This document shows, piece after piece, positions 3,679 to 62,496 of a DNA stretch of 64,000 bases (position 1 is the stretch's first letter; every line of letters starts with the position of its first letter). The stretch lies in IMG/VR virus record IMGVR_UViG_3300050120_000230, positions 186,001-250,000 of that record; one strand, 5' to 3'. A program made the translations under genes and the position numbers. The notes under the pieces were generated by a model. The model was not told where the DNA came from, searched no databases, and saw nothing but the letters and a program-made list of their open reading frames with translations.

Positions 3679-3750
3679 ATTGCACCGGAGTCAACGACTT
3701 AGTATAGTCAACTCTTGTTCGGGCAATATTCCGCCCTTTCTAGGAGTAAC

Positions 3751-4254
3751 ATGAGAATCCTTCTTCCTGATAACATCTCCTTCAACATGGAAGAGGTGCC
3801 TAACCAAGTAGACGATCTTCGGTATTGTGTCCTTGATTACTCAAACCAAGCCGATGTTGATTTCTACTTCATTCCGTTGATTTTCTTGGACCAGTTCCCT
3901 CGTCCGGCGGCCGATCTTCAGATTGGAAATTATCGAATCCAAATGCCACTCGATTGGTCGATCATCATCGCGGACAAACATCTTGGCGCCATGGAGATCG
4001 TGGAACTCAAGCACCTCAACGACCGTGACTTCGACGCTTTCGTGCTCAATCCGATCAATGGCTACATGCCGCAGTTCCTTGAGATCACGATACAAAACGT
4101 CTTTCCAGACGTGACGTGGAATATCCCGAAGTTGAAGCGCGGCCACATTCTAGCTGTCCCACTGTCAGACACGCCGGGAGCACCCTGTGCTTTCTTCGTG
4201 AAAGACACCAACAAGTTGCCCGATGGGCTCGACATCTCAAAGGTCTTCGCATGA
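3751..4254 (+). CDS. conserved-looking phage hypothetical protein
   Basis: ATG at 3751 preceded by AGGAG; beta-rich 167-aa ORF. Confidence 0.75.
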   Translation: MRILLPDNISFNMEEVPNQVDDLRYCVLDYSNQADVDFYFIPLIFLDQFPRPAADLQIGNYRIQMPLDWSIIIADKHLGAMEIVELKHLNDRDFDAFVLNPINGYMPQFLEITIQNVFPDVTWNIPKLKRGHILAVPLSDTPGAPCAFFVKDTNKLPDGLDISKVFA

Positions 4255-5105: not shown

Positions 5106-5636
5106 GTGGCAGCCCACAAGCTAGACATCTTCGAAACGCTCGCAGCTATCGATAAGCGAGACGGGGAGTTCTACGCCCGCCTGCCTGAAGAAATGCAAAA
5201 AGGTTTCGCGCCACCGGTGGTGCTTCGCTGGGCAAGCGCCGCTGAAGGCCCGGCCGCCGAGCATTACATTTGGCTGGTCAACGACCGGGCCAATGTGAAC
5301 TTCCACGACATTTGGGAACACCCCGAGCTTCAATATAAGCTCTTGGCCTCCTGCGGCTATGGCCGGGGTCAGCGCCACCAGTGGATTCCGATGGTCGGAA
5401 AAAATGCTAAATCCGATCAGGTGAGGGAGTTCCTCTGGCAGTTTTGGCCCGATGCGAACGCCATGGAATTGGACATCCTGTTCAAGCAATTCACTGACGA
5501 AACGTTTGAAGATTTTGTGCTGTCGAGCGGATGCGCGCCAGACGAAGCCAAGGAGATTTTGAAAGCATATGGGCGTCTCACAGGTAAGACCGCAGCTAAA
5601 CCCAAAGGCAAAAAAGGCAAGTCCGCCATCGCCTGA
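5106..5636 (+). CDS. probable clamp-loader small subunit (T4 gp62-like)
   Basis: FAPPVVLRW...HPELQYKLL...G.G..HQWIP pattern resembles gp62-like proteins; upstream TTGACA at 5039. Confidence 0.55.
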   Translation: MAAHKLDIFETLAAIDKRDGEFYARLPEEMQKGFAPPVVLRWASAAEGPAAEHYIWLVNDRANVNFHDIWEHPELQYKLLASCGYGRGQRHQWIPMVGKNAKSDQVREFLWQFWPDANAMELDILFKQFTDETFEDFVLSSGCAPDEAKEILKAYGRLTGKTAAKPKGKKGKSAIA

Positions 5637-6306
5637 GTTTACCTGTGACTACTGTAAGAAGTCCTACGTGAATGAGAGGACGTTTCTCGTTCATATGTGC
5701 GAACCCAAGCGCCGTTGGCTCGATCAAGACGCCAAGCATGTGAAGCTCGGGTTCTTCGTTTTCCAACGGTTCCACGAGGTGAACTACAAGGGTCGCCGAG
5801 AGAAGACATTCGACGATTTCATGCAGAGCCAATTCTACACATCGTTCACAAAATTTGGACGATATCTGCTGAACGTCAATGCCATCAATCCCAAGGGGTT
5901 CATCGACTTCCTAATCAGGACGGAAGTGAAGCTCAACAAGTGGGAAAGCCCTCTCGTCTACGAAACCTACGTGAGGGAGTTGAACAAGAAAGAAACGCCT
6001 GACGCGGCCATCGAGCGGAACTTCCTCTTGATGCAGCAGTGGGCGAATGACACCGGCGAACCTTGGACGGATTTCTTTCGCAAGATCGAACCGGCCTTGG
6101 CCACCAATTGGATCAGATCGGGCCGTATCAGCCCGTGGATTTTGTTCACTGCGTCGAGCGCGAAAGACCTGTTCGCTCGGCTGTCGGATGAGCAATTGGC
6201 TCTGGTCCAGAAAAACATCGATCCAGACTTTTGGAGCTTCAAGCTCGAAAAGGCCGGAGACGATGTGGGATTCATCCGCGAGCAGCTAGACGCAGCGGGT
6301 CTGTAA
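5569..6306 (+). CDS. zinc-finger protein of unknown function
   Basis: FTCDYCKKSYVNERTFLVHMC (C2H-C type finger); overlaps the upstream gene by 68 nt. Confidence 0.7.
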   Translation: MGVSQVRPQLNPKAKKASPPSPEFTCDYCKKSYVNERTFLVHMCEPKRRWLDQDAKHVKLGFFVFQRFHEVNYKGRREKTFDDFMQSQFYTSFTKFGRYLLNVNAINPKGFIDFLIRTEVKLNKWESPLVYETYVRELNKKETPDAAIERNFLLMQQWANDTGEPWTDFFRKIEPALATNWIRSGRISPWILFTASSAKDLFARLSDEQLALVQKNIDPDFWSFKLEKAGDDVGFIREQLDAAGL

Positions 6307-7185: not shown

Positions 7186-7569
7186 ATGTCGATCAAAGAT
7201 ATGCCGATGGGTGGCAACGTTAAGATTTTCACGATGACGAAAATCCCACCCAAGGTTGGCGTCCGCAGCCCCATGAATCGCGTGGGCAAGCCGTTCTACG
7301 ACACGACGAAGGGCCACGACACGATCACTGACATCACCAAAGAAATGTTCGAGAATTATTGGGGCGCCTCGATGCTTCGCAATGTGGGGTTCGAAGTTGT
7401 CCGAGTTTTTTCTATCCCGAATGGTGAGCGCGACAATCAAGAAACGATCATCAAGACCGTGAGAGCAGCGTGCAAAGGTAAGCTCGCTGCACTCGTGACC
7501 GATACCACCTTGAAAATCGCTCTCGAAAAAGAAGAGGACTCTGTCCTCCTGAAGATGTTCCTTGGATGA
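7186..7569 (+). CDS. hypothetical protein, FKL-motif family
   Basis: ends IALEKEEDSVLLKMFLG. Confidence 0.65.
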   Translation: MSIKDMPMGGNVKIFTMTKIPPKVGVRSPMNRVGKPFYDTTKGHDTITDITKEMFENYWGASMLRNVGFEVVRVFSIPNGERDNQETIIKTVRAACKGKLAALVTDTTLKIALEKEEDSVLLKMFLG

Positions 7570-8000
7570 CCTACGCCGTCAGCATCGCTGGCAACCAAGA
7601 CAGCGTCCATTGGGATAGCATCACCCGATGGGTCGAAGCCGTCGCTGGTCCACCCGGCGAACGCTGGTGTCTCTCCAACGACGACGAAGCCTCCATCTAC
7701 ATTTTCAAGCACCGAGCCCACGCCGAGCATTTCAAGCGAGTGTGGTCCTTCACGCCGCTGATTTTGGGTTACGAAGTGTGGGAAGAATTTTGCAATAGCC
7801 GTCTCAGCCGTGCAAGAGTGGATGATTATTGGAGGCATCGAAAGTGGCTCCCGAAAGTGGTCTTGTTTTTCGACCGACCAAAGGCGGTAAGTTCGACATT
7901 CGGCGGACAGAGACATTTTTCGATGCGGCATAAGTGTTGGTTCTTCGAAAACTACACCGATGCATGGCTATTCTGGATTGAGCATTACGAGGGCAAATAG
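7566..8000 (+). CDS. hypothetical protein, two FKL-like modules
   Basis: YIFKHRAHAEHFKRVW and FFENYTDAWLFW. Confidence 0.6.
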   Translation: MTYAVSIAGNQDSVHWDSITRWVEAVAGPPGERWCLSNDDEASIYIFKHRAHAEHFKRVWSFTPLILGYEVWEEFCNSRLSRARVDDYWRHRKWLPKVVLFFDRPKAVSSTFGGQRHFSMRHKCWFFENYTDAWLFWIEHYEGK

Positions 8001-8596
8001 TGCGCGTTACGACCGACATCGACATCGATTTTGCCGACCGCGATATGGCGCTGGTTGGTCTGATGCATGTCGCCGCCAGCATGGAGCAGAAAGGTCAGCT
8101 TTCTCGTCACCCGACTGGGGTCTACTTCCAGAACATCCCCACCGATCCGATCACGGGCTACTCGTCATTCAACTACGAGCAGGCGGCCGACAACGGCTAT
8201 TTCAAGATCGACTTCCTCAACAACTCGATCTACGGCGACGTGCGCGACGAAGAGCACCTCATTGCGTTGATGGCCGATCCCGACTGGGAAATGTTGGAGG
8301 TCGAAGAGATCGTGTCGATGCTCGCACACATCCACAACAGTTTCGGGTTGGTGAGCCAAATCCGACCCAAGAGCGTTGACGATCTGGCCGTTATCCTCGC
8401 GCTGATGCGGCCGGGCAAACGCCACCTGATGAGTCGTTCACGCGAAGAAATCGCCGCCGAAATCTGGAAGACCGGACAAGATGGTTTCGTCTTCAAGCGT
8501 GCCCACGCGATTGCATATGCGGTTAGCATTGTCGTGCAACTCAATTTGCTTTGCGAAAAAACCGCCGCAGCAATCGATGAGGCTGCTGGCCAATGA
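8000..8596 (+). CDS. miniature DnaE (Pol III alpha, family C) catalytic-core-like protein
   Basis: DIDID, HPTGVY, FKIDFL, LMRPG and FKRAHAIAYA correspond to DnaE palm/finger motifs; only 198 aa. Confidence 0.75.
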   Translation: MRVTTDIDIDFADRDMALVGLMHVAASMEQKGQLSRHPTGVYFQNIPTDPITGYSSFNYEQAADNGYFKIDFLNNSIYGDVRDEEHLIALMADPDWEMLEVEEIVSMLAHIHNSFGLVSQIRPKSVDDLAVILALMRPGKRHLMSRSREEIAAEIWKTGQDGFVFKRAHAIAYAVSIVVQLNLLCEKTAAAIDEAAGQ

Positions 8597-8955
8597 ACAC
8601 TTGCTACGTCGAGAATACCACTAGACGCCCGATGACACTCTGTTATGACGTGATGAAGGGATGGCATCACCTCTACACAATGGAGATGATGAAACTCCAA
8701 AGTGGTGAACTCACACTCAACGCGGGGCGCTTTGCTTCGTTCGTCAGAGATGAGCAACCGCACACTGTCACTTTGCGCGTGGATGGCAATGGCGATCAAA
8801 TGCAACGCCGTCTCGCGGAACTCATCACATGGATCGCGGGCCAGCCGGGACTATGGTCTTTCACGTTGAACGCCGAAAGTGTCGGCCGCACGTCGATCAC
8901 GTTTAGCTTCAATCACGTCACGACCGCCGTGACGTTCAAACTGGTCTGGTTTTGA
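8593..8955 (+). CDS. hypothetical protein, FKL-motif family
   Basis: ends FSFNHVTTAVTFKLVWF. Confidence 0.65.
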   Translation: MNTCYVENTTRRPMTLCYDVMKGWHHLYTMEMMKLQSGELTLNAGRFASFVRDEQPHTVTLRVDGNGDQMQRRLAELITWIAGQPGLWSFTLNAESVGRTSITFSFNHVTTAVTFKLVWF

Positions 8956-12937: not shown

Positions 12938-14155
12938 ATGGAACTCTTCTATGGTGTGTCGTATACAGTCTCGGAGGCTCACTTGCCAGAACCGCTCTTG
13001 TTCGGGATCATTTTGATCCCCGTCGCGATTTCGTTGTTCTGCAAGTATGCCTTGCGGTTCGAGATTTCGTGGCTCGAATTCGCCGCGCAACTGGTGATTG
13101 GTTTCTGCGTCTTCAGCCTGATTTGGGCTGTCGGTCGCTACTCGGCCGCCGGAGACACCGAAATCCTCAATGGCACGGTGCAGTCGAAGAACGCATGGCG
13201 TTTCTCCTGTCCGACCAACACCAGCAATCCGTGCCGCAACGGCTATTCCTGCCACTCGCACCAAGTCTGCTCGACCGTTGGTAGTGGCAAGGACGCCCAT
13301 GAGTCGTGCCATGAAGAGCACGATACCTGCTACGAATACGACTGGGAGCAGAACTGGTATGTGAAGTCGAACGTGCCGACCGCTTCCGAGATCGAGATCA
13401 AGCGCGTGGACGCGCAGGGCGCCTATATGCCGCCGCGCTACGACAAGGTTCAGGTCGGCGACCCGGTCTCCGGCACACATGCCTACAAGAACTGGGTGAA
13501 GGCTTCGGTCAACTCGCTCTTCAAGGAAGATGCGGGCAAGGACGAGACCTACAAGGCGCTGATGAAGCCCTATCCCATCGGCATCGTCGATTACTACAAC
13601 ATCGACCGGATCGTGACGCCCAATTTCCCGCTCGCCAACAAGCAAGCTTGGAACTGGGAACTGTCCAAGATGCTGGGCAAGCTCGGCCCGAGCCGTCAGA
13701 TGAACATGGTGGTGGTCATCGCCAACAACGTTCCGCGCGACTACGCCTATGGCGTTCGTCGTAGCTGGCAGGGGTTCAAAAAGAACGACGCGATCATCGT
13801 GATCGGCCTGCAAAATGGCAAGGTGTCGTGGGGCGAAACGATGTCGTGGTCGAAAAACTCGATCTTCAACATCGAAATGCGTAATATGGTGACCGATCTG
13901 CAAGGGACGGACATCAATGCGGTGAACCCCGCGACGTTCTTCGCCAACGTTCAGACGATCTCCACCAAGGACTTCGTCCGCCGCCCGATGAAAGAATTCG
14001 AGTACCTCAAGGGGGACATCCCGCCGCCGGTTTGGTTGATCGTCCTCTCCGTCATTCTCGCCATCCTGTTTGGCGTGGGAACCAGCGTGCTTTTCAACAA
14101 CGTCGATCTTGACGCCGCGATCTTCTCCGGCCGTCGCAACCAGAATTGGAGCTAA
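12938..14155 (+). CDS. membrane protein with TPM-like domain
   Basis: two N-terminal and one C-terminal TM helix; Cys-rich loop; SWQGFKKNDAIIVIG resembles the TPM W-x-G-K...N-G-hydrophobic motif. Confidence 0.6.
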   Translation: MELFYGVSYTVSEAHLPEPLLFGIILIPVAISLFCKYALRFEISWLEFAAQLVIGFCVFSLIWAVGRYSAAGDTEILNGTVQSKNAWRFSCPTNTSNPCRNGYSCHSHQVCSTVGSGKDAHESCHEEHDTCYEYDWEQNWYVKSNVPTASEIEIKRVDAQGAYMPPRYDKVQVGDPVSGTHAYKNWVKASVNSLFKEDAGKDETYKALMKPYPIGIVDYYNIDRIVTPNFPLANKQAWNWELSKMLGKLGPSRQMNMVVVIANNVPRDYAYGVRRSWQGFKKNDAIIVIGLQNGKVSWGETMSWSKNSIFNIEMRNMVTDLQGTDINAVNPATFFANVQTISTKDFVRRPMKEFEYLKGDIPPPVWLIVLSVILAILFGVGTSVLFNNVDLDAAIFSGRRNQNWS

Positions 14156-14157
14156 CT

Positions 14158-14784
14158 TTGTCCGACACCACCGCAACTCGTTCGGGGCCGAACGGCCTCA
14201 TCATCGGCCTCTGCGTCGCCGCAGCCGTCGTGGCCGTGCTCTTCGTCATGCTGTTCAGCAGCTACACCGGCGCCGTCGCCTATGGTGCTCAGTCCGAGCA
14301 GCAGATCAACGCGACGTGGGAGAACAACAAGCAAATCCTCGGGACCTACACGACCAAGATCGGCGAAATGGCCCAAGTCCCCGGCATGGCTCGCGGCGAC
14401 CTTCAGAAGGTCATCCAGACCAGCATGTCGGCGCGCTACGGCGAGGATGGGTCCAAGGCCACCGTGCAGTGGATTCACGAGAACTATCCGGGCTCCGTTG
14501 ACCCCGCGCTTTATCGCAACATCCAGACCGCTATCGACGCGGGCCGTACCGACTTCTCGGAGAACCAGAAGCGCCTTCTGGACCAGAAGCGTGAATACCA
14601 GACCCACCTCGCCTACGTGGTGCAGGGGTTCTGGCTGCACGCCGCTGGCTATCCGAAGATGGACCTGAACAAGTTCAACGTGGTCACCTCGACTTCGGCC
14701 GAACACTCGTTCACCACCGGCGTCGATGACGGCGTGAAGCTGCCGAGTTCCGACCCGGCGCCTGCGGCTCCGGCCAGCAAGTAA
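14158..14784 (+). CDS. LemA-like membrane-anchored helical protein
   Basis: TTG start 6 nt after GGAG; single N-terminal TM then helical EQQINATWENNKQIL segment; adjacent to the TPM-like gene. Confidence 0.55.
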   Translation: MSDTTATRSGPNGLIIGLCVAAAVVAVLFVMLFSSYTGAVAYGAQSEQQINATWENNKQILGTYTTKIGEMAQVPGMARGDLQKVIQTSMSARYGEDGSKATVQWIHENYPGSVDPALYRNIQTAIDAGRTDFSENQKRLLDQKREYQTHLAYVVQGFWLHAAGYPKMDLNKFNVVTSTSAEHSFTTGVDDGVKLPSSDPAPAAPASK

Positions 14785-14811
14785 GCGTTCACCCATCGGC
14801 AATACTGGGAG

Positions 14812-14836
14812 AGGCGGGGCATGTCCCCGCCTTTTC
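14812..14836 (+). terminator. intrinsic terminator
   Basis: AGGCGGGG-N5-CCCCGCCT followed by TTTCT. Confidence 0.8.
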
Positions 14837-14843
14837 TATTTGG

Positions 14844-14871
14844 TTGACGAGAATCACTTCTGGGGTAAACT
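14844..14871 (+). promoter_or_regulatory. early/host-type promoter
   Basis: TTGACG-N16-TAAACT. Confidence 0.65.
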
Positions 14872-14904
14872 GTAGGCATAAGGGAACAACCCGGAGGCAC
14901 AACT

Positions 14905-15342
14905 ATGACCGAGCGCATGACTTTCACCACCGTCAATGGCTACAAGGCTTCCGCTGCGGATCAGGTCGATACCATCCGCAAGCTTCTCGAAGGCTTCGGC
15001 TCCATCGCCTACATGTCCGGCACGCGCGGCATCGAAATGAAGCTCGGCGCCGAAATCAACATGCGTCTGGCCATCCTTCACAATCTGTTCGCCCGCATGA
15101 CGGTCGCTGACCAGATCGACGAAGAAGAACTCGAAGGGAAGGGCGCGCGCATCGACCGCCTCGACAAGCAAGGCCGCGAAGTTCTCCGCGAAGAACTGGC
15201 CTTCATCGCCGGGACCGTCAACGACCCCTATCTCTACGCCTCGGAACCGGTCAACTACCAGCAGGCCGCCGTCATCAACCTCCACAAGGCCCGCGACATC
15301 CTCGCCTATCGTGTGGAACGCAACACGCGCGACCCGGCCTGA
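14905..15342 (+). CDS. hypothetical protein
   Basis: GGAGG RBS; 145 aa; strong codon bias. Confidence 0.75.
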   Translation: MTERMTFTTVNGYKASAADQVDTIRKLLEGFGSIAYMSGTRGIEMKLGAEINMRLAILHNLFARMTVADQIDEEELEGKGARIDRLDKQGREVLREELAFIAGTVNDPYLYASEPVNYQQAAVINLHKARDILAYRVERNTRDPA

Positions 15343-21794: not shown

Positions 21795-22172
21795 TTAGTC
21801 TGGACGGCGGACCAATGTCACCTGACGCTTGCGAACCCGGCGAGCGATAGTTTCTTGGAGGCTGACACATGGGCCAGCTTGGAGATCGAAGTTCTTACGG
21901 TCGAAATGCTTCAGGTAGGGGCGGAACGGTTTGAAGCGATCCTTCAGGAAAATGTTGATAGGAATTTGGCGGTTGCTACCCCACCACCATTCGAGCCCGT
22001 AGTTGAGGAATTGACGACGCAGTTTCTCGTCAGGAATCGAATCCAGCACATACATCGAGAGAAGTTGGTTATCCGAGTTCTGAATGATCCCAAGGTAGGG
22101 TGTGTCCAACAGCACACCATAGCTCAAGAATGGGAACTTCGTCAGGATAAGGGCGATGCGCTCGTCTTCCAT
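21795..22172 (-). CDS. conserved-looking phage protein
   Basis: start reassigned to the ATG at 22172; minus-strand TAAATA at 22201-06; KFPFLSYG...YLGIIQN. Confidence 0.65.
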   Translation of the reverse strand: MEDERIALILTKFPFLSYGVLLDTPYLGIIQNSDNQLLSMYVLDSIPDEKLRRQFLNYGLEWWWGSNRQIPINIFLKDRFKPFRPYLKHFDRKNFDLQAGPCVSLQETIARRVRKRQVTLVRRPD

Positions 22173-22249
22173 AAGACCAATACTGAAAGCTTTGTGGGGG
22201 TATTTATACTCGCACAAAACCACAACCTTTCGTCTCAAATAAATATCGG

Positions 22250-30804: not shown

Positions 30805-31884
30805 TTGAGCAATATGCTGTCCAAAGTGGTGCATGACGACTTCGTGTGGTCAGCCATCACGGGCGCGCTCTCGGGCAAGCGCCGCGTGTCTAACACGCAA
30901 TTCATCAACATCAATTGCCCTATGTGCGTTCTGCGTGGGGAAAGCGCCGACCGCAAGCAGCGGTGCGGCATCAAGCACAATCCCGATGGAGTGGGTGTGT
31001 CATGCTTCAACTGCGGGTTCGCCAGTCGCTTCAAGACCGGCGAGACCCTCAGCAAGAACATGAAGCTGTTTCTGGGCGCCATCGGGGTGCCGTCTCGTGA
31101 AGTCCAGCACATCAATCACAAGGCGCTGCAATATCGCCGCCTGATCGCCAACAGTCCAGAAGCTATGGCGATCATACCCACGATCAACAGGCCACAGTTC
31201 CAACCATCCAGCTTGCCGCCGGGCGCGAAGACCTTGTCGCAGTGGGCATCGGACGGCGTAACAGACCCGGATTTCTTCGCGGTGGTCGAATATCTGTTCG
31301 GGCGCGGCGAGGCCATTTCCGAGGCTATGGACTACTATTGGACGCCGGACACCGACAACGCCATGAACCGGCGTATCCTGATCCCGTTCAAGTTCAACGG
31401 CCAGATCGTCGGTTGGACCGGGCGCCTTGTGGATCGGGCGACAGAGAAAATGCCGAAATATTGGAGCAGTGTGCCGTCGAACTTTTTGTTCAACCACGAG
31501 ATGCTCGAATCCGACTGCAAGTTCATCATCCTCGAAGAAGGTCCATTCGACGCCATTGCGACAGATGGGGTCGCGACGTTGGGAGCCAAGCTGACAGATG
31601 AGCAAGCCCACTGGCTGAACACCACCGGCAAGACGATCATCGTGCTCGCCGACCGTGACAAGGGCGGCCAGAGGCATATCGATCATGCCTTGCAGCACAA
31701 TTGGATGGTGAGTTTCCCGAAATTGAAAGATGGCCACGGTTTTCAGAACTGGTGGCACAGCGATGTAAAGGATGCGGCCGAAGCTTCGAAGCGTTATGGT
31801 AAGCTCTACACCGTGCGTTCCATCATCGAGAGCGCCACTTCGTCGAAGATCGAGATCGGCGTGAAGCGAAGGATGCTGTTCTGA
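30805..31884 (+). CDS. DNA primase (T4 gp61-like)
   Basis: CPMC...CFNC zinc ribbon; TOPRIM EEGPFDA and ADRD. Confidence 0.88.
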   Translation: MSNMLSKVVHDDFVWSAITGALSGKRRVSNTQFININCPMCVLRGESADRKQRCGIKHNPDGVGVSCFNCGFASRFKTGETLSKNMKLFLGAIGVPSREVQHINHKALQYRRLIANSPEAMAIIPTINRPQFQPSSLPPGAKTLSQWASDGVTDPDFFAVVEYLFGRGEAISEAMDYYWTPDTDNAMNRRILIPFKFNGQIVGWTGRLVDRATEKMPKYWSSVPSNFLFNHEMLESDCKFIILEEGPFDAIATDGVATLGAKLTDEQAHWLNTTGKTIIVLADRDKGGQRHIDHALQHNWMVSFPKLKDGHGFQNWWHSDVKDAAEASKRYGKLYTVRSIIESATSSKIEIGVKRRMLF

Positions 31885-32417: not shown

Positions 32418-33875
32418 ATGAGCGATTCTAACGAGGAATTCGGTTCCGAATTCCAACAACTGATGCTTGCTTTCATGATTAGCGACCCGGAAGCGTTCGC
32501 ACAGAGCCAAGACATCATCAAGGCCGAGTATTTTGACGACAGGTTGCGTCCGGCTGCCCGGTTCATTCTTGAATACGCTGACCAATATCGTCAGCTTCCG
32601 AGCCCTGAACAAGTTCAGGCGATGTCCAAGGTCACCGTCATGGCCTATCCGCAAGCCATGACCCAGAGCAAGTGGTATCTGGATCGCATCGAAGCATTCT
32701 GCAAATACCGTGCTCTTGAGTCCGCTATTCTCGAAGGCGTCACCCTGCTCGAAAAAGGTGAAGGTGCCAAGCTGCAAGAGTTGGTCAAGGAGGCGATGGA
32801 AATCAGCCTCGTGAAAGACCTTGGAACGTCTTACTTCCACGATCCAGTCACCCGGCTCGAACGCCTGAAAGACAACTCCAATTTCGTCCCGACCGGTTGG
32901 AAGGTTCTCGACGACAAGCTCTACGGCGGTTTCACCCGTGGCTCTCTGAACATCTTCGCCGGTGGCTCCGGTTCCGGCAAGTCACTGTTCCTTCAGAACC
33001 TCGCGAAGAAGTGGGCGCTCACTGGTCTGAACGTGATCTACATCACGCTCGAACTGTCAGAAGACCTCGTCAATTTGCGTCTCGACGCCATGGTCACCGG
33101 CAAGGGGACCAAGGACGTTCTGCGGAATGTGCGTGACACGGCCAATCAGATTGGCGTGATCGTCAAAACGAAGAAGCCGGGCGACCTGAAGGTCAAGAAG
33201 TTCCCCGAAGCCGGGACGACTTGCAACACCGTCCGCGCCTACCTCAAGGAATACGAAATCCAAGAGGGCCGCAAGCCCGACGTGCTGCTCATCGACTACC
33301 TCGACCTGATGCACCCGAACAATGCAAAAATCGACGTGTCCAGCATGTTCACCAAGGACAAGTATGTCTCGGAAGAGATGCGCGCCATCGGCTCGGATTG
33401 GAACATCCCGGTAGTGTCCGCTTCCCAGTTGAACCGCCAGTCCGTGGAAGCTCAGGAGTTCGATCACAGCCACATCGCGGGCGGTATTTCGAAGATCAAC
33501 ACCGCCGACAACGTGTTCGGTATTTTCACCTCCATGTCGATGAAGGATCGCGGCGTCTATCAACTCCAATTCCTGAAGACCCGTTCGTCGTCGGCAACCG
33601 GTCACAAAATCGAGCTTTCCTACAACCCGGTTTCCATGGCAATCGAAGACCCGGATGAGGGAGATGCCGCAGTCCGGCCGAGCACCATGGACGAGATCAG
33701 GCAACAGTTCAAAAACAACCCGACCGCGACGCGGGGGGACGGAGAAGTCAAGATGACCGCTCCTGCGGAGGTTCCTGCTGGCCGAAAGATCAGCGAAATG
33801 GCCACACCGCAGGCCGGGCCGCTGCGTGCCGATCTGTCAAGCTTGATCGCTCGAACGCGTAAGAGTGAAAACTGA
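32418..33875 (+). CDS. replicative DnaB-family helicase (T4 gp41-like)
   Basis: GGSGSGKS, ITLELSE, IDYLDLM, SQLNR and KTR motifs. Confidence 0.92.
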   Translation: MSDSNEEFGSEFQQLMLAFMISDPEAFAQSQDIIKAEYFDDRLRPAARFILEYADQYRQLPSPEQVQAMSKVTVMAYPQAMTQSKWYLDRIEAFCKYRALESAILEGVTLLEKGEGAKLQELVKEAMEISLVKDLGTSYFHDPVTRLERLKDNSNFVPTGWKVLDDKLYGGFTRGSLNIFAGGSGSGKSLFLQNLAKKWALTGLNVIYITLELSEDLVNLRLDAMVTGKGTKDVLRNVRDTANQIGVIVKTKKPGDLKVKKFPEAGTTCNTVRAYLKEYEIQEGRKPDVLLIDYLDLMHPNNAKIDVSSMFTKDKYVSEEMRAIGSDWNIPVVSASQLNRQSVEAQEFDHSHIAGGISKINTADNVFGIFTSMSMKDRGVYQLQFLKTRSSSATGHKIELSYNPVSMAIEDPDEGDAAVRPSTMDEIRQQFKNNPTATRGDGEVKMTAPAEVPAGRKISEMATPQAGPLRADLSSLIARTRKSEN

Positions 33876-43683: not shown

Positions 43684-45708
43684 ATGGCAATCGGTTACGT
43701 TGTTTATATGGGGAAAGGCGATCCAGTCGGAGACACTATCAAAGTGCCGCTCCGTCCTCATGCTGACCTTGCCTCTGCTCAGGCAGCGGCCGGAGATCAT
43801 TCTCGCGTTTTCGAAGTGAATGTCGAAAATCCCGATGAAACGGGCAAGGGAACGTGCACCATCATCAAGCAAATCGATGGAAACATCGAAGAGGGCTTGC
43901 GTGCATGGCCCGACATGACTTTCGATGACACCGAAGACGCACAAAGTGCTCTGGATTGGCATGACCGTCATGCGAAAATCCATGCGGGCAAAATGAAATC
44001 CGAGCCGGGTCGTAGAACCAGCCACGCAGATTTCGTCAATATTCACAAACGCAAGGCCAAGGCCGCCAAAGAATGGCTTGCCAAGAACGGAGCCGCGAAG
44101 GAGCCCATGAAAGAAGACGCAAACGCCGAACACTATCACGGTCTTACTGGCTGGGTTTCTGATTACAAAGCCCAGCGCAAAGCTGGCAACGTTGCGGACG
44201 CCAAGCAGACTCGCGACAACATCAAAGCCGTCATCAAGAAACACAATCTCGATGCAACCAAAGTCTGGGGCGAAGACCCCGATCAACCGAAGGAACCCAT
44301 GAAAGAATCCAAAGCAGTGAGCGGCCTCGCCTTTCTCGTCGAGAGCGAACTCGAAAAGGCCCAAGTCGTTATTGCGGCGAAGGGTATTCTGGACAAGCTT
44401 CAGAAAATGGCTGAAGACCTCGCCAAGACCGAAGCCGACGATATCATGCCCATGCTCGACAGTATGCGTCTGACGTTTGGCCCGGAACTGACGGACAGCT
44501 TCAACGACATCACCACCGCGAAGATTCGCCAGACCATGGAAGCCGTCAAGGGCGCCAAGGAAGCGATCACGCGTGAAGTCGGCCGCCTTGAAAACGAAGT
44601 CAACGGCGACATGACCAATGACATTGGCATGGGCGACCAAGACAACGGCGAAGATATGGATGCAGGCGACATGGGTGCGGAAGCTCCCGAGGGCGAACTG
44701 AACATGGGCGACGACAACATGCCCCCGATGGATGGTGCGGAAGCTCCGATGCCGGGTGACGACGAAGAAGTTCCCGATCCGGCCGCAGATGGTGGTTTGG
44801 ATGCAGCGTTCGACGACGCTGCCGCAGACACCACGGCCGCCGGTCGTGCAAAGAAGGAAAGTGTTCAGCGCAACGTGAAGGCGCTCAGCGAGTCCAAGAA
44901 CCCGGATCGCCTCGTGTTCGAAACCTTCCGCCGCACTCTGAAGGAATCGAAAGACGCCGTTCGTGCTGCTCAAGCTGTGGCACAGGCATTCGCCATCGAT
45001 TTCGCCGACGTGGTCGCCATCGTGAAGGAAGGCAAGACATTCAAGGACGAAAAAGGCAAGACCGACAAGAACAAGGATCGCGCCGAAGACCGCAAGGAAA
45101 AGAAGCGCAATCGTCCCTCCGATCTCGACGAGGATTTCGGCGACAACAAGGCCCCTCCCTTCGGCAAGAAGGCCGATAAGGACGAAGGTGAGGACAAGAA
45201 AGACGACAAGGCCGACAAAAAGCCTGCCGCTTCCAAGAAGCCTTGGGAAAAAGATGACGAGAAAGTCGAAGAAGGTAAGACCTTCAAAGACGAAAAAGGC
45301 AAGACCGACAAGAACAAGGATCGCTCCGGCGAGCGCAAAGACAAGAAGCGCGAACGTGAAGAACTCGGGGAGGGTTCCAAGCGCCCTTTTGACTCTGCCA
45401 GCCCCCCGGACGTGCACCAGAAAAAGATAGCTCTCAAGACTTTGAAGATGTCGGACGTTGGTGCAGATGTCATGGGTGGCATGAGCAAGGTTGAAGCCCG
45501 CTCGTTCCTCAAGAACCGGTGCGGATACAGCGATGCTCGAATCGCAAAACTCGAAGAGGGTGCGATTATGAACATTGGTGAGGCGACTATTGAGCAGTTG
45601 CAACGACGCGAAGAAGACCTCGCTCGTGCAGCCGCCGCCCGCCGCGCCAAGGGCTTCGGCGCCATGGCTGATGCCAAGGAAAAGCAGAAACCCGCCGAGA
45701 AAAAATGA
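43684..45708 (+). CDS. prohead core/scaffold-like polyprotein
   Basis: 674 aa, highly charged; repeated xxE-[GSD] junctions; central coiled coil. Confidence 0.65.
   Translation: MAIGYVVYMGKGDPVGDTIKVPLRPHADLASAQAAAGDHSRVFEVNVENPDETGKGTCTIIKQIDGNIEEGLRAWPDMTFDDTEDAQSALDWHDRHAKIHAGKMKSEPGRRTSHADFVNIHKRKAKAAKEWLAKNGAAKEPMKEDANAEHYHGLTGWVSDYKAQRKAGNVADAKQTRDNIKAVIKKHNLDATKVWGEDPDQPKEPMKESKAVSGLAFLVESELEKAQVVIAAKGILDKLQKMAEDLAKTEADDIMPMLDSMRLTFGPELTDSFNDITTAKIRQTMEAVKGAKEAITREVGRLENEVNGDMTNDIGMGDQDNGEDMDAGDMGAEAPEGELNMGDDNMPPMDGAEAPMPGDDEEVPDPAADGGLDAAFDDAAADTTAAGRAKKESVQRNVKALSESKNPDRLVFETFRRTLKESKDAVRAAQAVAQAFAIDFADVVAIVKEGKTFKDEKGKTDKNKDRAEDRKEKKRNRPSDLDEDFGDNKAPPFGKKADKDEGEDKKDDKADKKPAASKKPWEKDDEKVEEGKTFKDEKGKTDKNKDRSGERKDKKREREELGEGSKRPFDSASPPDVHQKKIALKTLKMSDVGADVMGGMSKVEARSFLKNRCGYSDARIAKLEEGAIMNIGEATIEQLQRREEDLARAAAARRAKGFGAMADAKEKQKPAEKK
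45028..45324 (+). repeat. two near-identical 54-bp direct repeats encoding EGKTFKDEKGKTDKNKDR
   Basis: copies at 45028-45081 and 45271-45324. Confidence 0.9.
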
Positions 45709-45908
45709 CCGAACGAACCTTCAATTTCGACCCCGGCACAGCCAAGGCCATTCATGACCTTAAAGCTGTGTTCGGGGTCGCGTCCGGTCTCGAAGTGATA
45801 CGCAAAGCCGTCGCTCTGGCCCGGATCGCTGAACGCAATTCCACCGATCACACCATCACTATGGTGGACTCGAAGGGGACGGCGACTACAATTTTACTGA
45901 ACGGGTAA
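45705..45908 (+). CDS. small putative DNA-binding protein (ribbon-helix-helix-like)
   Basis: short strand plus two helices, EVIRKAVAL. Confidence 0.5.
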   Translation: MTERTFNFDPGTAKAIHDLKAVFGVASGLEVIRKAVALARIAERNSTDHTITMVDSKGTATTILLNG

Positions 45909-45911
45909 CCG

Positions 45912-46298
45912 ATGAGACTGTTTGAACTTTTTGATGATGATAGTCTCGATGTCACCGACGACATCAAGCAGAGTCTTATGGATATCCTGACACCAATGGT
46001 TGCCTCGCGGGTGCCATTCGTCACGATTCAACAAATCATCGAAAAACTCACGCAGCTTCGCACCGGAGTCATGATCGACAGAAATCTCATCATGACCCTT
46101 CTAGACCCCGACCAGATCAAGATCATCAGCAAGATTGAAGGTGATCGCGTCTATCTCAGCAATCCAAACTCCCCCGACCGAAGCCTCGGCAAAGACGATG
46201 CCGAGAAAGAAGCCGAGCACGTTGATGACATGGCCCAGAAACAGGCTCAGAAAGCCATGGGAGCCGGGAATAAGACCGGTGGGGACGCTCCGCTTTAA
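45912..46298 (+). CDS. late protein with capsid-targeting-like N-terminus
   Basis: starts MRLFELFD. Confidence 0.7.
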   Translation: MRLFELFDDDSLDVTDDIKQSLMDILTPMVASRVPFVTIQQIIEKLTQLRTGVMIDRNLIMTLLDPDQIKIISKIEGDRVYLSNPNSPDRSLGKDDAEKEAEHVDDMAQKQAQKAMGAGNKTGGDAPL

Positions 46299-58625: not shown

Positions 58626-59510
58626 ATGAGCGGCGTCGTGGGTTACGAATACGAACTCAAAGACACGCTCTTGGACGTGCGCGACGTGAGCATGGTCTAT
58701 GGAGACAATGTCGTCCTGCGTGATGTGAGTTTCCAGATCAAAGATATCGTCCGGCCGGGTAAAACACAGGGTCAGGTCAATGCTTTGCTGGCGCCCTCCG
58801 GCACGGGGAAAACTCAGCTATTTCGATGTATCGCTGGGCTCCAAGTTCCGACCAACGGTGAAGTTTTCTTGAACCGCCATGATTGCACCGCTGATGGCAA
58901 AGCCGTCGTGGATGACAAGGGCCAGCCAATTTTGAAGCCGGTGACAGTTGGGTCAGTCGGCGTGGTTGCACAGGACTATCCGCTGTTCAATCACCTGTCC
59001 GTCTGGGACAATCTGATGATGGCGGCCGAAATCAAGATGAACAAGGCCGCCGCCACAGAAAAAGTCGAAGCGTTGCTTCAACGTTTCGGTCTCTCCGAAC
59101 GACGCACGTTCTATCCGCAGGCGCTTTCTGGCGGCCAGCGGCAACGCGTGGCGATCATCCAGCAAATGGTCTGCAATGGTAAATTGCTGCTGATGGATGA
59201 ACCATTCTCCGGTCTCGATATCATCATGAAGGAAGAGGTGCAGAACCTCATCTCCGACGTGGCCGCGTCCGACGAGTGGAATTCTGTCATCGTCACGACC
59301 CATGACATCCAAAGCGCCATCGCCGTGGCCGACACGATTCTTCTGTTGGGCAAAGAACGCAAGCCCAACGGTGAGATCGTCCCCGGCGCCTACATCAAGC
59401 ACACCTACAATTTGATGGACCTTGGGCTGACTTGGCACCCGGATATCGCTTCTCTTCCGGCATTTGCCGAACTTGAACGCGAAATCAAGGCGCGGTTTAG
59501 GGAACTGTGA
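58626..59510 (+). CDS. ABC transporter ATP-binding protein (SsuB/TauB-like)
   Basis: APSGTGKT, Q-loop VAQD, LSGGQRQR, LLMDEPFSGLD and TTHD. Confidence 0.93.
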   Translation: MSGVVGYEYELKDTLLDVRDVSMVYGDNVVLRDVSFQIKDIVRPGKTQGQVNALLAPSGTGKTQLFRCIAGLQVPTNGEVFLNRHDCTADGKAVVDDKGQPILKPVTVGSVGVVAQDYPLFNHLSVWDNLMMAAEIKMNKAAATEKVEALLQRFGLSERRTFYPQALSGGQRQRVAIIQQMVCNGKLLLMDEPFSGLDIIMKEEVQNLISDVAASDEWNSVIVTTHDIQSAIAVADTILLLGKERKPNGEIVPGAYIKHTYNLMDLGLTWHPDIASLPAFAELEREIKARFREL

Positions 59511-59758
59511 TGGATTACGAAACGGTCGTTCGAGCGAGTTTGGCCGGGACGCTCATTCTCGTCACCATAACGTTGGCCATCATGTTCGCAGATTGGTGGC
59601 GGCGGGGCCGCAGTAGTCATTGGGTTACGGTGGCTCAAATCGACGGCATCGTCTATCAACAACACAAAACGCGCCCCGAATGGCGGCGATGGTATCCGAC
59701 TTTCAGTGGATACCGGGTGCGGATCGACTGGATCAAGGGCAGAACCGACAAGCTCTAA
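59507..59758 (+). CDS. small membrane protein
   Basis: one N-terminal TM helix; GTGA overlap. Confidence 0.55.
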   Translation: MMDYETVVRASLAGTLILVTITLAIMFADWWRRGRSSHWVTVAQIDGIVYQQHKTRPEWRRWYPTFSGYRVRIDWIKGRTDKL

Positions 59759-59827
59759 TCCATTTTCGTTGACGAAATTATAATCTGGGGGCATGATGCT
59801 TGTAACAAAACAAGCACGAGGCACCCC

Positions 59828-60373
59828 ATGACCGACCGTTTCACGCGTCCCCAAACCGAATTGCTTCGTTCTCTCGACGAAGAGCCCGGTGTATGGGCCG
59901 AGTGCAACGAAAGCGAATGGCGGACTGCCGTGTCGCTGCAAAAGCGCGGCCTCGTCGAACTTGATCGCGATCCGAGCGACCATTCGCCTCGTCGTTTCGA
60001 TGCGCGCACCACTTCGGTCAGCCCGAACTACAACAACGGTGTTCGAGACATTCCCTACGACAAGCACGTCTTCGTGCTTGCACGGCCGATCAAGGGCGAC
60101 TGGAAGGAATACGACGGTTCGACCAGTGCACGCGGTCGCCAAGAGTTCCGCCCCTGCATGATCCAAGGCCACGACGGCGGCCAGCGCCTCTATGTGATCG
60201 GCAGCCAATACGCCTACGATCTGACCAAGTTCGAAATCCGCGAATTCGAAGCGTTCTCGGCCAAGCCGGTAAAGGACGATTTGCTGCACAAGCTGCTGGT
60301 CAATGGCGAGGCCGATGCCGAAGAACAGGCGGATGCGGCGAACTGGATTGGCCGTCTGGCGGGACAAGCCTGA
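59828..60373 (+). CDS. hypothetical protein
   Basis: GAGG RBS; TTGACG-N17-CATGAT promoter at 59769. Confidence 0.7.
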   Translation: MTDRFTRPQTELLRSLDEEPGVWAECNESEWRTAVSLQKRGLVELDRDPSDHSPRRFDARTTSVSPNYNNGVRDIPYDKHVFVLARPIKGDWKEYDGSTSARGRQEFRPCMIQGHDGGQRLYVIGSQYAYDLTKFEIREFEAFSAKPVKDDLLHKLLVNGEADAEEQADAANWIGRLAGQA

Positions 60374-60591
60374 TGGCTGGTCTTCGTCGTCTTGCAAAGA
60401 TGTTCGGCGGTCTCACCGCAATCAGCACCAATCCGGTCACCGGGGAAGTGACGAAGGTCGAACACGTTTGGGACTACGTCGCCGATGAACCGACCACTAG
60501 CGACGAGATGCCTGTGGGTTCTGAAAGATGGAAGGCGTCTGAACGCGTGAAATGGGCTAATGTCGGTGGCGGCGAAGACAAATTGATCTGA
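60373..60591 (+). CDS. small hypothetical protein
   Basis: TGATG coupling; 72 aa. Confidence 0.6.
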   Translation: MAGLRRLAKMFGGLTAISTNPVTGEVTKVEHVWDYVADEPTTSDEMPVGSERWKASERVKWANVGGGEDKLI

Positions 60592-60611
60592 GTCGTGAAG
60601 CCGACATTTAC

Positions 60612-60639
60612 TTGACGGAAATTGGTTTGCGAATAAGCT
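60612..60639 (+). promoter_or_regulatory. early/host-type promoter giving a leaderless argS mRNA
   Basis: TTGACG-N16-TAAGCT, ATG 7 nt downstream, no SD. Confidence 0.6.
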
Positions 60640-60646
60640 GCACCGT

Positions 60647-62236
60647 ATGGACATTCTAGAGCAACTTTTGAGTCAGGCATTCGCCGCCGAAGGTTTGGAC
60701 CCCGCACTTGCTGTGGTGTCGCCTTCGGAGCGGCCGGACCTTGCCGATTTTCAATCGAACGGAGTGTTTCTAGCGGCCAAGGCTGCGCGGATAAATCCTC
60801 GGGCTCTGGCCGAGCGGATCGTTGAACGGCTCAAACACCCAGACATCACGTTCGAAGTAGCCGGGCCGGGCTATATCAACATGACGCTGGGTCCGGCTCT
60901 GCTCGAAAAGATGCTGCTGGACAACAGTCCGATCCCACAGGTTTCCGGTCGGATCGTGTTGGATTTCGGTGGACCGAATGTCGCCAAGCCGATGCATGTG
61001 GGTCATATGCGGTCTCTGGTGATCGGTGACGCCCTTCAACGGATTTTGCGGTTCGTGGGCTACGAGGTGCTGTCCGACATCCACCTCGGCGACTGGGGCC
61101 TCCAAATGGGCCTGTTGCTGGCGGCCTTGGAAGGCACACCGCTACATGACTACAATATCGCGCTGTTGGAAAAAACCTATCCACAGGCGGCGGCTCTTGC
61201 CAAAGAGGATGAACCCTTCCGGTTGAAGGCACAGATGTTCACGCGCCTACTGCAACAAGGTGATCCCGAGCTTATGCAGCGGTGGCGGAAAATGGTCTGC
61301 GTGAGCATGACCACCGTCAATCGGGAGCTTGCTGCTCTGAAAGTCAATTTCACTCTCATGAAGGGTGAAAGTGACGTTCAGGACTTGATCCCCGATATGA
61401 TCGCGAGCTTCGTCGCCAAAGGGATCGTAGAGGAAGACAACGGGGCGCTCGTCGTCCGGGTTGGAGAACCTCCACTCATCCTGCGGAAGTCGGATGGTGC
61501 GGCTCTCTATTCCACGACCGATCTCGCGACGATCCTTGATCGGAAGGCAGCCTTCGATCCCGACAAGATCATCTATGTGACCGATGAACGGCAGCAACTT
61601 CACTTCAAGCAGGTTTTCGCGGCGGCCGAGATGGCTGGTTATCTGAACGGCAAGCTCGAACTCGAACACATCTGGTTCGGGACGGTGAACGACGCCAATG
61701 GCAAGCCACTCAAGACGCGGGCTGGTGGTGTGCCGAAGTTGCACGACCTGATCGAAGAAGCGATCACCAAGGCGTCCGAGAAGAATGCTGAATCGGCGAT
61801 CCCGGTGGCTATGGCGGCGTTGAAGTTCGCCGATCTACAAAACCCTCGGACAGGGTCGTATTCTTTCGATCTCGATAAGTTCCTGAGCTTCGAAGGCAAG
61901 ACCGGCCCATATCTGCTCTATCAAGCGGTGCGGATCAAATCCATCCTCGTCAAGTCGGTTGAACCCGGCCCGATTACGCTTGAGACCGCACAGGAGCGGG
62001 CTCTTGCGTTCAAGCTGGTGTTCGGTTTCCGGCAGGCGCTCGATGGCGCCGTGCGGCGATTGTCGCCCAAAGAGATCGCCGATCACGCCTACGATCTCGC
62101 GCAATCCTTCTCGAAGTATTATGCGAACACGCAGATCGGAGAATCACCGTCGAGGGTGGCCCTCTCTGCCAAGGTGTTGGCCCAACTGGAATGCTGCTTG
62201 GGTCTGATGGGTATCGATATCCCCGAGCGGATGTGA
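60647..62236 (+). CDS. argS: arginyl-tRNA synthetase
   Basis: N-terminal add-on domain (ADFQSN, VAGPGYIN), PNVAKPMHVGHMRS HIGH motif, GDWGLQMG, KSDG..LY.TTDLA, EGKTGPYLLY and DALR-type anticodon domain. Confidence 0.95.
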   Translation: MDILEQLLSQAFAAEGLDPALAVVSPSERPDLADFQSNGVFLAAKAARINPRALAERIVERLKHPDITFEVAGPGYINMTLGPALLEKMLLDNSPIPQVSGRIVLDFGGPNVAKPMHVGHMRSLVIGDALQRILRFVGYEVLSDIHLGDWGLQMGLLLAALEGTPLHDYNIALLEKTYPQAAALAKEDEPFRLKAQMFTRLLQQGDPELMQRWRKMVCVSMTTVNRELAALKVNFTLMKGESDVQDLIPDMIASFVAKGIVEEDNGALVVRVGEPPLILRKSDGAALYSTTDLATILDRKAAFDPDKIIYVTDERQQLHFKQVFAAAEMAGYLNGKLELEHIWFGTVNDANGKPLKTRAGGVPKLHDLIEEAITKASEKNAESAIPVAMAALKFADLQNPRTGSYSFDLDKFLSFEGKTGPYLLYQAVRIKSILVKSVEPGPITLETAQERALAFKLVFGFRQALDGAVRRLSPKEIADHAYDLAQSFSKYYANTQIGESPSRVALSAKVLAQLECCLGLMGIDIPERM

Positions 62237-62496
62237 TGCGCTGGTTCTGGGAAATGCTCTATCGCCGCCAAGCGGTAGAGGTTGTCCTTGATCGAGATTG
62301 CATCAGAGTTCTCGGCGGTGATGGTCCCACGACCTTGGCCAGACTACGAGATGTCGAGCGCGAATGGTGTCGTCACAACGTTCGCAGGCCATTCGGTCTA
62401 TATTGCCGATGGCGAGGCGTAGGGGGCGGATACCATGCGTATCTGTGGTTCATTGAGCCGAAAGATGCTGCACTCTTCAAAATGTTTCAAACGTGA
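62236..62496 (+). CDS. hypothetical protein, FKL-motif family
   Basis: ends LWFIEPKDAALFKMFQT. Confidence 0.65.
   Translation: MRWFWEMLYRRQAVEVVLDRDCIRVLGGDGPTTLARLRDVEREWCRHNVRRPFGLYCRWRGVGGGYHAYLWFIEPKDAALFKMFQT

Follow-up and report, generated by a model that had tools for sequence, protein, structure and literature searches.

An uncultivated virus record of 415,409 bp (IMG/VR IMGVR_UViG_3300050120_000230) holds, within the 64,000-nucleotide stretch analysed here (positions 186001–250000 of the record; 'the window'), a gene of 198 codons that resembles a fragment of the bacterial replicase DnaE. The gene probably encodes the C-terminal subunit of a two-piece minimal DNA polymerase III (Pol III) alpha of the group 2.2 (RaK2 / PA5oct / Atu_ph07-like) jumbo phages. 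'C-piece' denotes below the family of this 198-amino-acid (aa) open reading frame (ORF), and 'N-piece' the PF07733-type partner family. Positions are those of the window unless prefixed G000, which marks whole-record numbering, and Escherichia coli residues are those of the dnaE product of NC_000913.3. The gene and its motifs are as follows.

8000–8596, + strand: gene for the putative C-terminal (metal- and template-binding) subunit of a split minimal Pol III alpha, comprising the second palm half and a reduced finger core; 198 aa
8012–8032, + strand: TDIDIDF, residues 5–11, a beta strand with D6 and D8 (the first two catalytic Asp residues) and D10; E. coli D401, D403 and D405, by local alignment to PDFDVDF
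8204–8218, + strand: KIDFL, residues 69–73, a strand with the third catalytic Asp, D71, and with K69; E. coli D555 and K553, by hhalign with 39 DnaE sequences and by local alignment
8408–8416, + strand: RPG, residues 137–139, a finger motif; E. coli R639-P640-G641
8492–8521, + strand: FKRAHAIAYA, residues 165–174, a finger helix motif; E. coli F756–A765 (FNKSHSAAYA), with H169 equivalent to H760

An earlier note, made from the DNA sequence alone, had called this ORF a mini-DnaE on the strength of DIDID, KIDFL, RPG and FKRAHAIAYA; the ORF and all four motifs are real, and the motifs map to E. coli DnaE. The frame opens at a GTG, the first start codon past an in-frame stop, with a Shine–Dalgarno-like GAGGG 6 nt ahead of it, and the start shares 1 nt with the TAG stop codon of the ORF upstream (TAGTG). 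There is one copy of the gene in the whole record. The upstream ORF (144 aa, 7566–8000, + strand) has no PHROG or Pfam match, and closer kin carry other small ORFs (141 aa, 74 aa) at its position. An antisense ORF of 191 aa (8230–8805, − strand), which overlaps the C-piece gene, is in all likelihood spurious; long ORFs on the antisense strand are common in this genome of 55% G+C. Promoter, terminator and tRNA scans around the gene gave nothing informative.

The protein matches PHROG 11778 ('DNA polymerase') at E 1.4e-63, with residues 3–187 lying on profile positions 5–194 of 197. At E <= 1e-5 it has 1,933 homologues, viral wherever the source is known. These are 175–278 aa long and nearly all 190–227 aa (175–227 aa in all but one of the 120 listed), and the 45 taken into an alignment, 54–89% identical, all begin at the same DxD strand. 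T5–D10, H37, K69, D71, R137, P138 and H169 are invariant among the 45, and F165, A170, A172, Y173 and A174 nearly so. The ratio of nonsynonymous to synonymous substitution (dN/dS) is about 0.11 against two relatives, with dS near saturation. Judged by these comparisons, the ORF is far beyond what a chance frame would be expected to give. The nearest relatives are metagenomic, up to 89% identical, and several sit on contigs of 457–608 kb; identity to proteins of cultured phages is 41–50% (among the 40 matches listed). C-pieces of the PHROG 11778 type occur in 96 phage records, all of jumbo phages, one copy each (query coverage at least 80%). A protein atlas search with the C-piece matched viral 'hypothetical' clusters only. 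Pfam gave PF17657 alone, below threshold (15.7 bits, cut-off 22; E 0.0096; residues 117–140), and PF07733 had no match in the protein; run on the whole record, PF17657 found the C-piece ORF and nothing else.

The AlphaFold2 model, built on the 45-sequence alignment, has a mean predicted local distance difference test score (pLDDT) of 91.7 and a predicted template-modelling score (pTM) of 0.73. The top 17 Foldseek matches in the PDB are all C-family polymerases (Taq, E. coli and Mycobacterium tuberculosis Pol III alpha; PolC), with E values from 2e-3 and probabilities up to 1.00, and VIA-align gives Z 8.8–5.7 for its top 14 entries, again all C-family, against 3.5 for the next unrelated chain. 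The earlier note had been ready to drop its reading if no Pol-beta-like palm were predicted; with only C-family polymerases as neighbours of the model, that doubt fails.

Residues 1–198 of the model cover E. coli DnaE 397–784 (PDB 2hnh), with nothing past about 784, and the first residue of the protein corresponds to E. coli 397–400. Sequence mapping used an alignment of 39 DnaE sequences compiled from genome loci; a single E. coli DnaE sequence is too weak a hhalign target, reaching 3–12% probability even for the C-piece. Against the 39 sequences, residues 36–140 fall on E. coli 510–642. Residues 12–35 stand in place of E. coli 407–509, so that the thumb (433–510) is gone, and residues 140–164 stand in place of 642–755, so that about 110 finger residues are gone. 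The region of the RPG motif is the sole stretch detected by PF17657 and by hhalign against E. coli DnaE. E. coli 271–396 has no equivalent in the C-piece, which hence lacks the triphosphate-binding GRGS loop (G361–S364), and the statement that the protein retains all catalytic motifs was to that extent too strong. The same note was right that PHP, OB and clamp-binding regions are missing: neither these nor thumb or tau-binding parts are found in a protein that, at 198 aa, is too short for them and in which Pfam sees only the weak finger match, although the OB fold was not searched for separately. The complete single-chain palm of canonical DnaE and PolC is absent, because the C-piece begins at the DxD strand and has no PF07733 match. 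As modelled, the C-piece is the second half of a Pol-beta-like palm, with all three metal-binding Asp residues, joined to a much reduced finger core.

A split minimal Pol III has already been reported from the group 2.2 jumbo phages, whose genomes encode a T4-like family B polymerase (PolB) as well (Iyer et al. 2021, Viruses 13:63, PMC7824862). The phage studied here is likewise a jumbo phage with a T4-like PolB, and no PHP or HHH_6 was found in its record. For comparison, the whole genomes of the isolates Paride, RaK2 and Atu_ph07 were translated, all six-frame ORFs being kept in the final sets, and ORF families were aligned with the DnaE alignment. One family (Paride 58804–59313, 169 aa; RaK2 148852–149370; Atu_ph07 240847–241380) aligns over E. 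coli DnaE 267–393 with a hhalign probability of 93.9% and E 1.6e-7. It has more than 7,500 members of about 170–180 aa, and those in related genomes are 164–177 aa long. Four scanned N-pieces score 35–46 bits with PF07733 (cut-off 23.9), over profile positions 18–95 only. GxGRGSxVxS is invariant in N-pieces, and their C-terminus is always [ED][FY]L[KNER], at times with one more residue; the terminal 'EFLK' equals E. coli F-L-N393, a few residues short of the DxD strand. Every N-piece displayed in the alignments has an acidic residue, E or D, where E. coli has R390.

Both halves are present in all four isolates (Phosso, Paride, RaK2 and Atu_ph07) and in all five large IMG/VR contigs that bear a C-piece. 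In these nine genomes the first palm half is a separate N-piece ending at the seam, 33–224 kb from the C-piece and never adjacent to it, which bears out the suggestion in the earlier note that the ORF could be one piece of a split polymerase. Closer kin, with C-pieces 63–69% identical to the one here, also appear from sequence searches to carry both halves: a longest contig of 322,753 bp is listed for C-piece P0022 (69% identical) as well as for N-piece P0276, and the two occur in one Logan sample, SRR26457796; for C-piece P0045 and N-piece P0286 the longest contig listed is in each case 457,165 bp. A scan of metagenome contigs gave no close relative on a large contig; a homologue 81% identical to the C-piece sits on a 569,661-bp NCBI contig.

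A structure prediction for the complex of the window protein with N-piece P0276 scored 0.87, the best of three controls reaching 0.25; 58 of 80 solved complexes and 2 of 110 mismatched pairs attain the mark for this score. Contacts agree between runs to at least 96%, and the partner has a pLDDT of at least 87. C-piece residues 9–11, in the DIDIDF strand, are predicted to touch partner residues 139–140, just ahead of the GRGS loop, and the predicted partner-binding surface overlaps conserved C-piece positions. Such a pairing of strands is what one would expect of two chains that rebuild one Pol-beta-like sheet. What the prediction supports is likeness and a conserved seam, binding itself being only predicted.

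On the proposed mechanism, the N- and C-pieces would come together to complete a single beta-sheet, in which the DIDIDF strand pairs with the partner strand ahead of GRGS so that one active site is rebuilt. The N-piece would hold the triphosphate of the incoming nucleotide, with the two-metal centre and the contacts to the template and the nascent base pair coming from the C-piece. A heterodimer of about 370 residues could then add nucleotides to a 3'-OH on a DNA template by two-metal catalysis. It should be distributive because it has no thumb or clamp contact, and it would be an auxiliary of the T4-like PolB replicase, in gap filling, repair or primer handling, and not the main replicase. 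The earlier note had allowed that the function could differ from replication; the presence of a T4-like PolB makes a task outside bulk replication plausible, and that much of the suggestion can be kept, as conjecture. Polymerase activity, template dependence and biological role are all presumed.

Several observations weigh against the two-piece enzyme. No N-piece is detectable in the 415-kb record with PF07733 or with a three-sequence profile, nor with unfiltered 3- and 45-sequence hidden Markov models (HMMs) run on six-frame translations of the record; the same 45-sequence HMM recovers the N-pieces of the isolates at E 1e-62 to 1e-67. Because no partner is detectable in the record, a heterodimer in this phage is argued from its relatives and from a completeness of about 72%. 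For the closer kin, the claim to both halves stands on equal lengths of the longest contigs and a common sample, and not on one record read through, so that they only appear to have both. The complex score may mirror what the prediction model has learnt of the intact DnaE palm; the partner was heterologous, and the alignments were ones compiled for this analysis. Without the thumb and about 110 finger residues, the activity could be one other than DNA-templated synthesis, and literature searches turned up no biochemical or genetic data on any member of the family.

The absence of a partner has to be read beside the state of the record, which is linear and 72% complete by CheckV. Seventeen of the 54 ORF families common to the three isolates (31%) have no counterpart in it, among them the conserved neighbours of the N-piece, and it also lacks the block that in Paride adjoins the genes of the record's left end. 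Several homologues 56–81% identical to the C-piece lie on contigs of 457–608 kb, which makes it probable that the phage comes from a clade whose genomes measure about 570 kb. This pattern of missing genes suggests an incomplete record rather than a lineage without the partner, and the partner gene of this phage is most likely in the roughly 28% of the genome that the record lacks. The observation in the earlier note that no other DnaE fragment lies nearby proved sound and extends beyond the window: PF07733, PF02811 (PHP) and PF14579 (HHH_6) are negative in the window and in the whole 415-kb record. Nor is there a PHP domain in five relatives, of which two are IMG/VR records with a completeness rating of 100%, and PHROG scans of about 40 conserved ORFs revealed no second polymerase piece.

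A number of candidates for the missing half were rejected. Of two found by a regular expression for GRGS, G000 262529–263140 (− strand) looks ferritin-like, with two ExxH motifs, and G000 60946–61773 (+ strand) resembles a spurious antisense ORF. A phmmer search with E. coli DnaE 260–400 gave G000 61739–62452 (− strand, E 0.014), which has an Arg-rich N-terminus, a spurious look, no RGS motif and no PHROG match. The product of G000 45596–45997 (− strand; 3.5% against DnaE) has an invariant GER..P..G block, which we take to resemble that of the baseplate protein gp25. Lastly, a 19-residue match to the N-piece HMM (E 0.73) at about G000 169,747–169,827, among tRNA-gene-like sequence with no GRGS near, was judged to be chance. 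Six-frame translations of the surrounding region, about G000 168,500–171,000, resemble a tRNA gene cluster; ARAGORN, run on the 64-kb window only, found no tRNA.

A two-piece enzyme that is active but not DNA-templated, such as a terminal transferase, a primer-modifying or -extending enzyme, or a synthase of signalling or anti-defence nucleotides, would account for the deletion of the thumb (E. coli 433–510) and of about 110 residues between RPG and the F-x-K-x-H helix, for the acidic residue in place of R390 in the N-pieces displayed, and for the presence of a full T4-like PolB with clamp-loader-type neighbours; many enzymes of the Pol-beta fold are, moreover, untemplated. It is harder to reconcile with the invariant RPG and F-x-[KR]-x-H-x-x-A-Y-A, which are the conserved finger motifs of true DnaE and PolC, with the location of the C-piece between helicase and primase/DnaB genes in all relatives, and with the fact that replicative C-family polymerases are its sole structural neighbours. 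On balance we think it unlikely. The variant in which the heterodimer is a thumb-less C-family nucleotidyltransferase with some other product (a template-independent tail, a protein- or primer-linked nucleotide, or an anti-defence nucleotide), or in which the C-piece of the clade with genomes of about 570 kb uses another N-terminal partner, seems similarly improbable.

That the 198-aa protein is a minimal stand-alone nucleotidyltransferase, as the earlier note proposed as its other option, in a lineage that has no N-piece, would agree with the failure to detect an N-piece in 415 kb of this phage and with the presence of all three metal-binding Asp residues. Set against this, the first palm half is missing from a protein that opens at the DxD strand, and with it the NTP-binding GS loop by which Pol-beta-like transferases are defined; nine of nine other genomes have the N-piece, as apparently do kin with C-pieces 63–69% identical; the missing ORF families, with the neighbours of the N-piece among them, are those of a record 72% complete; and the predicted partner-binding surface overlaps conserved positions. 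We consider this option very unlikely. A decaying or non-catalytic dnaE remnant, or a frameshift or misassembly artefact of a long dnaE, might be thought of because DnaE normally exceeds 1,000 aa and the C-piece ORF overlaps the stop codon of the ORF upstream. Family size, selection and fold leave it with next to no credibility and lead us to exclude it: there are 1,933 homologues, of which all but one of the 120 listed measure 175–227 aa, dN/dS is about 0.11, the catalytic residues are invariant and the model is confident and compact. The upstream 144-aa ORF lacks PHROG and Pfam matches, and the record holds no PHP, HHH_6 or further finger sequence, as the five relatives hold no PHP. A length of about 200 aa and a start at the DxD strand, kept in all 120 listed of the 1,933 homologues, likewise dispose of the sequencing frameshift that the earlier note had allowed for. 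The C-terminal subunit of a split minimal Pol III alpha is the reading retained here.

Its closest described counterparts are the C-subunits of that kind in cultured phages (PHROG 11778; RaK2 ORF124, YP_007007279; Paride_0017; Phosso gp437). These have the same length and DxD-strand start, the same catalytic and finger residues and a full-length profile match, and they too belong to jumbo phages with a T4-like PolB and a block of genes running from a helicase to primase/DnaB. The gene here differs in that its product is only 41–50% identical to theirs, in that the PHROG 11637 gene is 13 kb off, and in that primase and DnaB are about 22 kb off. With DnaE and PolC (PDB 2hnh; Taq 2hpi/3e0d; Geobacillus PolC 3f2b), its sole significant structural neighbours, the C-piece shares the Pol-beta-like palm strands, the Asp triad, the K553-type Lys, and the RPG and F-x-K-S-H-x-A-Y-A finger motifs; unlike them, it covers only the equivalent of residues 397–784, the first palm half being on another polypeptide.

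The DnaE-n and DnaE-c proteins of cyanobacteria such as Synechocystis are split-intein halves, which are trans-spliced into full-length DnaE. They resemble the phage system in that a C-family polymerase comes from two distant genes. The phage halves, however, meet at palm residues with no room for an intein, the split interrupts the catalytic fold itself, and the two halves together amount to only about 370 residues. MenT toxins and CD-NTases are small and share the superfamily fold and two-metal Asp chemistry of the C-piece; in them a single chain bears both the GS loop and the Asp triad and is without DnaE-type fingers, and MenT4 (E 0.89) and MenT1 (E 1.8) are noise-level Foldseek rows for the C-piece model.

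The kind of protein is already known, having been described computationally in 2021 and labelled 'DNA polymerase' in PHROGs. Some GenBank records already name the C-piece 'DnaE-like DNA polymerase III alpha', and some sources name N-pieces 'DNA polymerase III alpha subunit'. The copy here adds a divergent new member, from an uncultivated phage. No smaller version of the catalytic core of the bacterial replicase is known than this family, in which the core is split in the middle of the active-site fold. Should the two pieces together restore an active enzyme, they would define the minimal requirements of C-family polymerases and offer a tractable model for the origin of these polymerases, as argued by Iyer et al. 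(2021). Both halves are abundant in metagenomes: the databases searched contain about 1,900 C-pieces and upwards of 7,500 N-pieces. An apt name for the gene is 'split minimal DNA polymerase III alpha, C-terminal subunit' rather than 'stand-alone mini-DnaE', and the record is best treated as an incomplete genome without the partner gene.

The surroundings of the C-piece gene include the following conserved genes.

1425–2882, + strand: UvsW-type DEAD/Helicase_C DNA helicase, which opens the conserved replication block; PHROG 16 / 9690 'DNA helicase'
3715–4254, + strand: conserved gene of unknown function, PHROG 11279
5106–5636, + strand: conserved gene of unknown function, PHROG 11758
5569–6306, + strand: conserved gene of unknown function, PHROG 11058
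30805–31884, + strand: DNA primase, PHROG 47
32418–33875, + strand: DnaB-like replicative helicase, PHROG 19

The same UvsW-type helicase precedes the C-piece in Paride, RaK2, Atu_ph07 and metagenomic kin, and the trio of PHROG 11279, 11758 and 11058 stands between helicase and C-piece in all phages compared (Paride 13533–15224, RaK2 112785–114812, Atu_ph07 59682–61786). The three proteins show no DnaE similarity by hhalign; they may be further parts of the replisome. For the PHROG 11058 protein, Pfam gives weak, sub-threshold matches to a PD-(D/E)XK nuclease and, close to the N-terminus, to a C2H2 zinc finger; a protein atlas search with this protein was blank. Three lineage-specific small ORFs separate the trio from the C-piece.

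Downstream of the C-piece, primase and DnaB are reached after about 22 kb, compared with 1.5–3 kb in Phosso, Paride, RaK2 and Atu_ph07; the intervening 8597–30800 holds mostly unannotatable genes. The small PHROG 11637 gene, which in all four isolates abuts or overlaps the 3' end of the C-piece convergently, is here at 21795–22238 (− strand), 13 kb beyond the C-piece. Close metagenomic kin, too, have a + strand gene directly 3' of the C-piece.

The T4-like PolB (933 aa; PHROG 262, E 4.5e-184) is encoded outside the window, at G000 64422–67223, and is directly flanked by an HNH/homing-endonuclease-like ORF at G000 67260–67967; a further HNH endonuclease ORF occupies G000 73310–74317. The record also encodes a homologue of ribosomal protein S21 (PHROG 21469; G000 395249–395482) and a ClpP-like protease (G000 406476–407075). 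The only match seen to the major head protein family is a partial one, of about 50 residues, in an ORF of 183 aa at G000 252032–252583 (− strand), and the capsid gene may be interrupted or may lie within the missing part of the genome.

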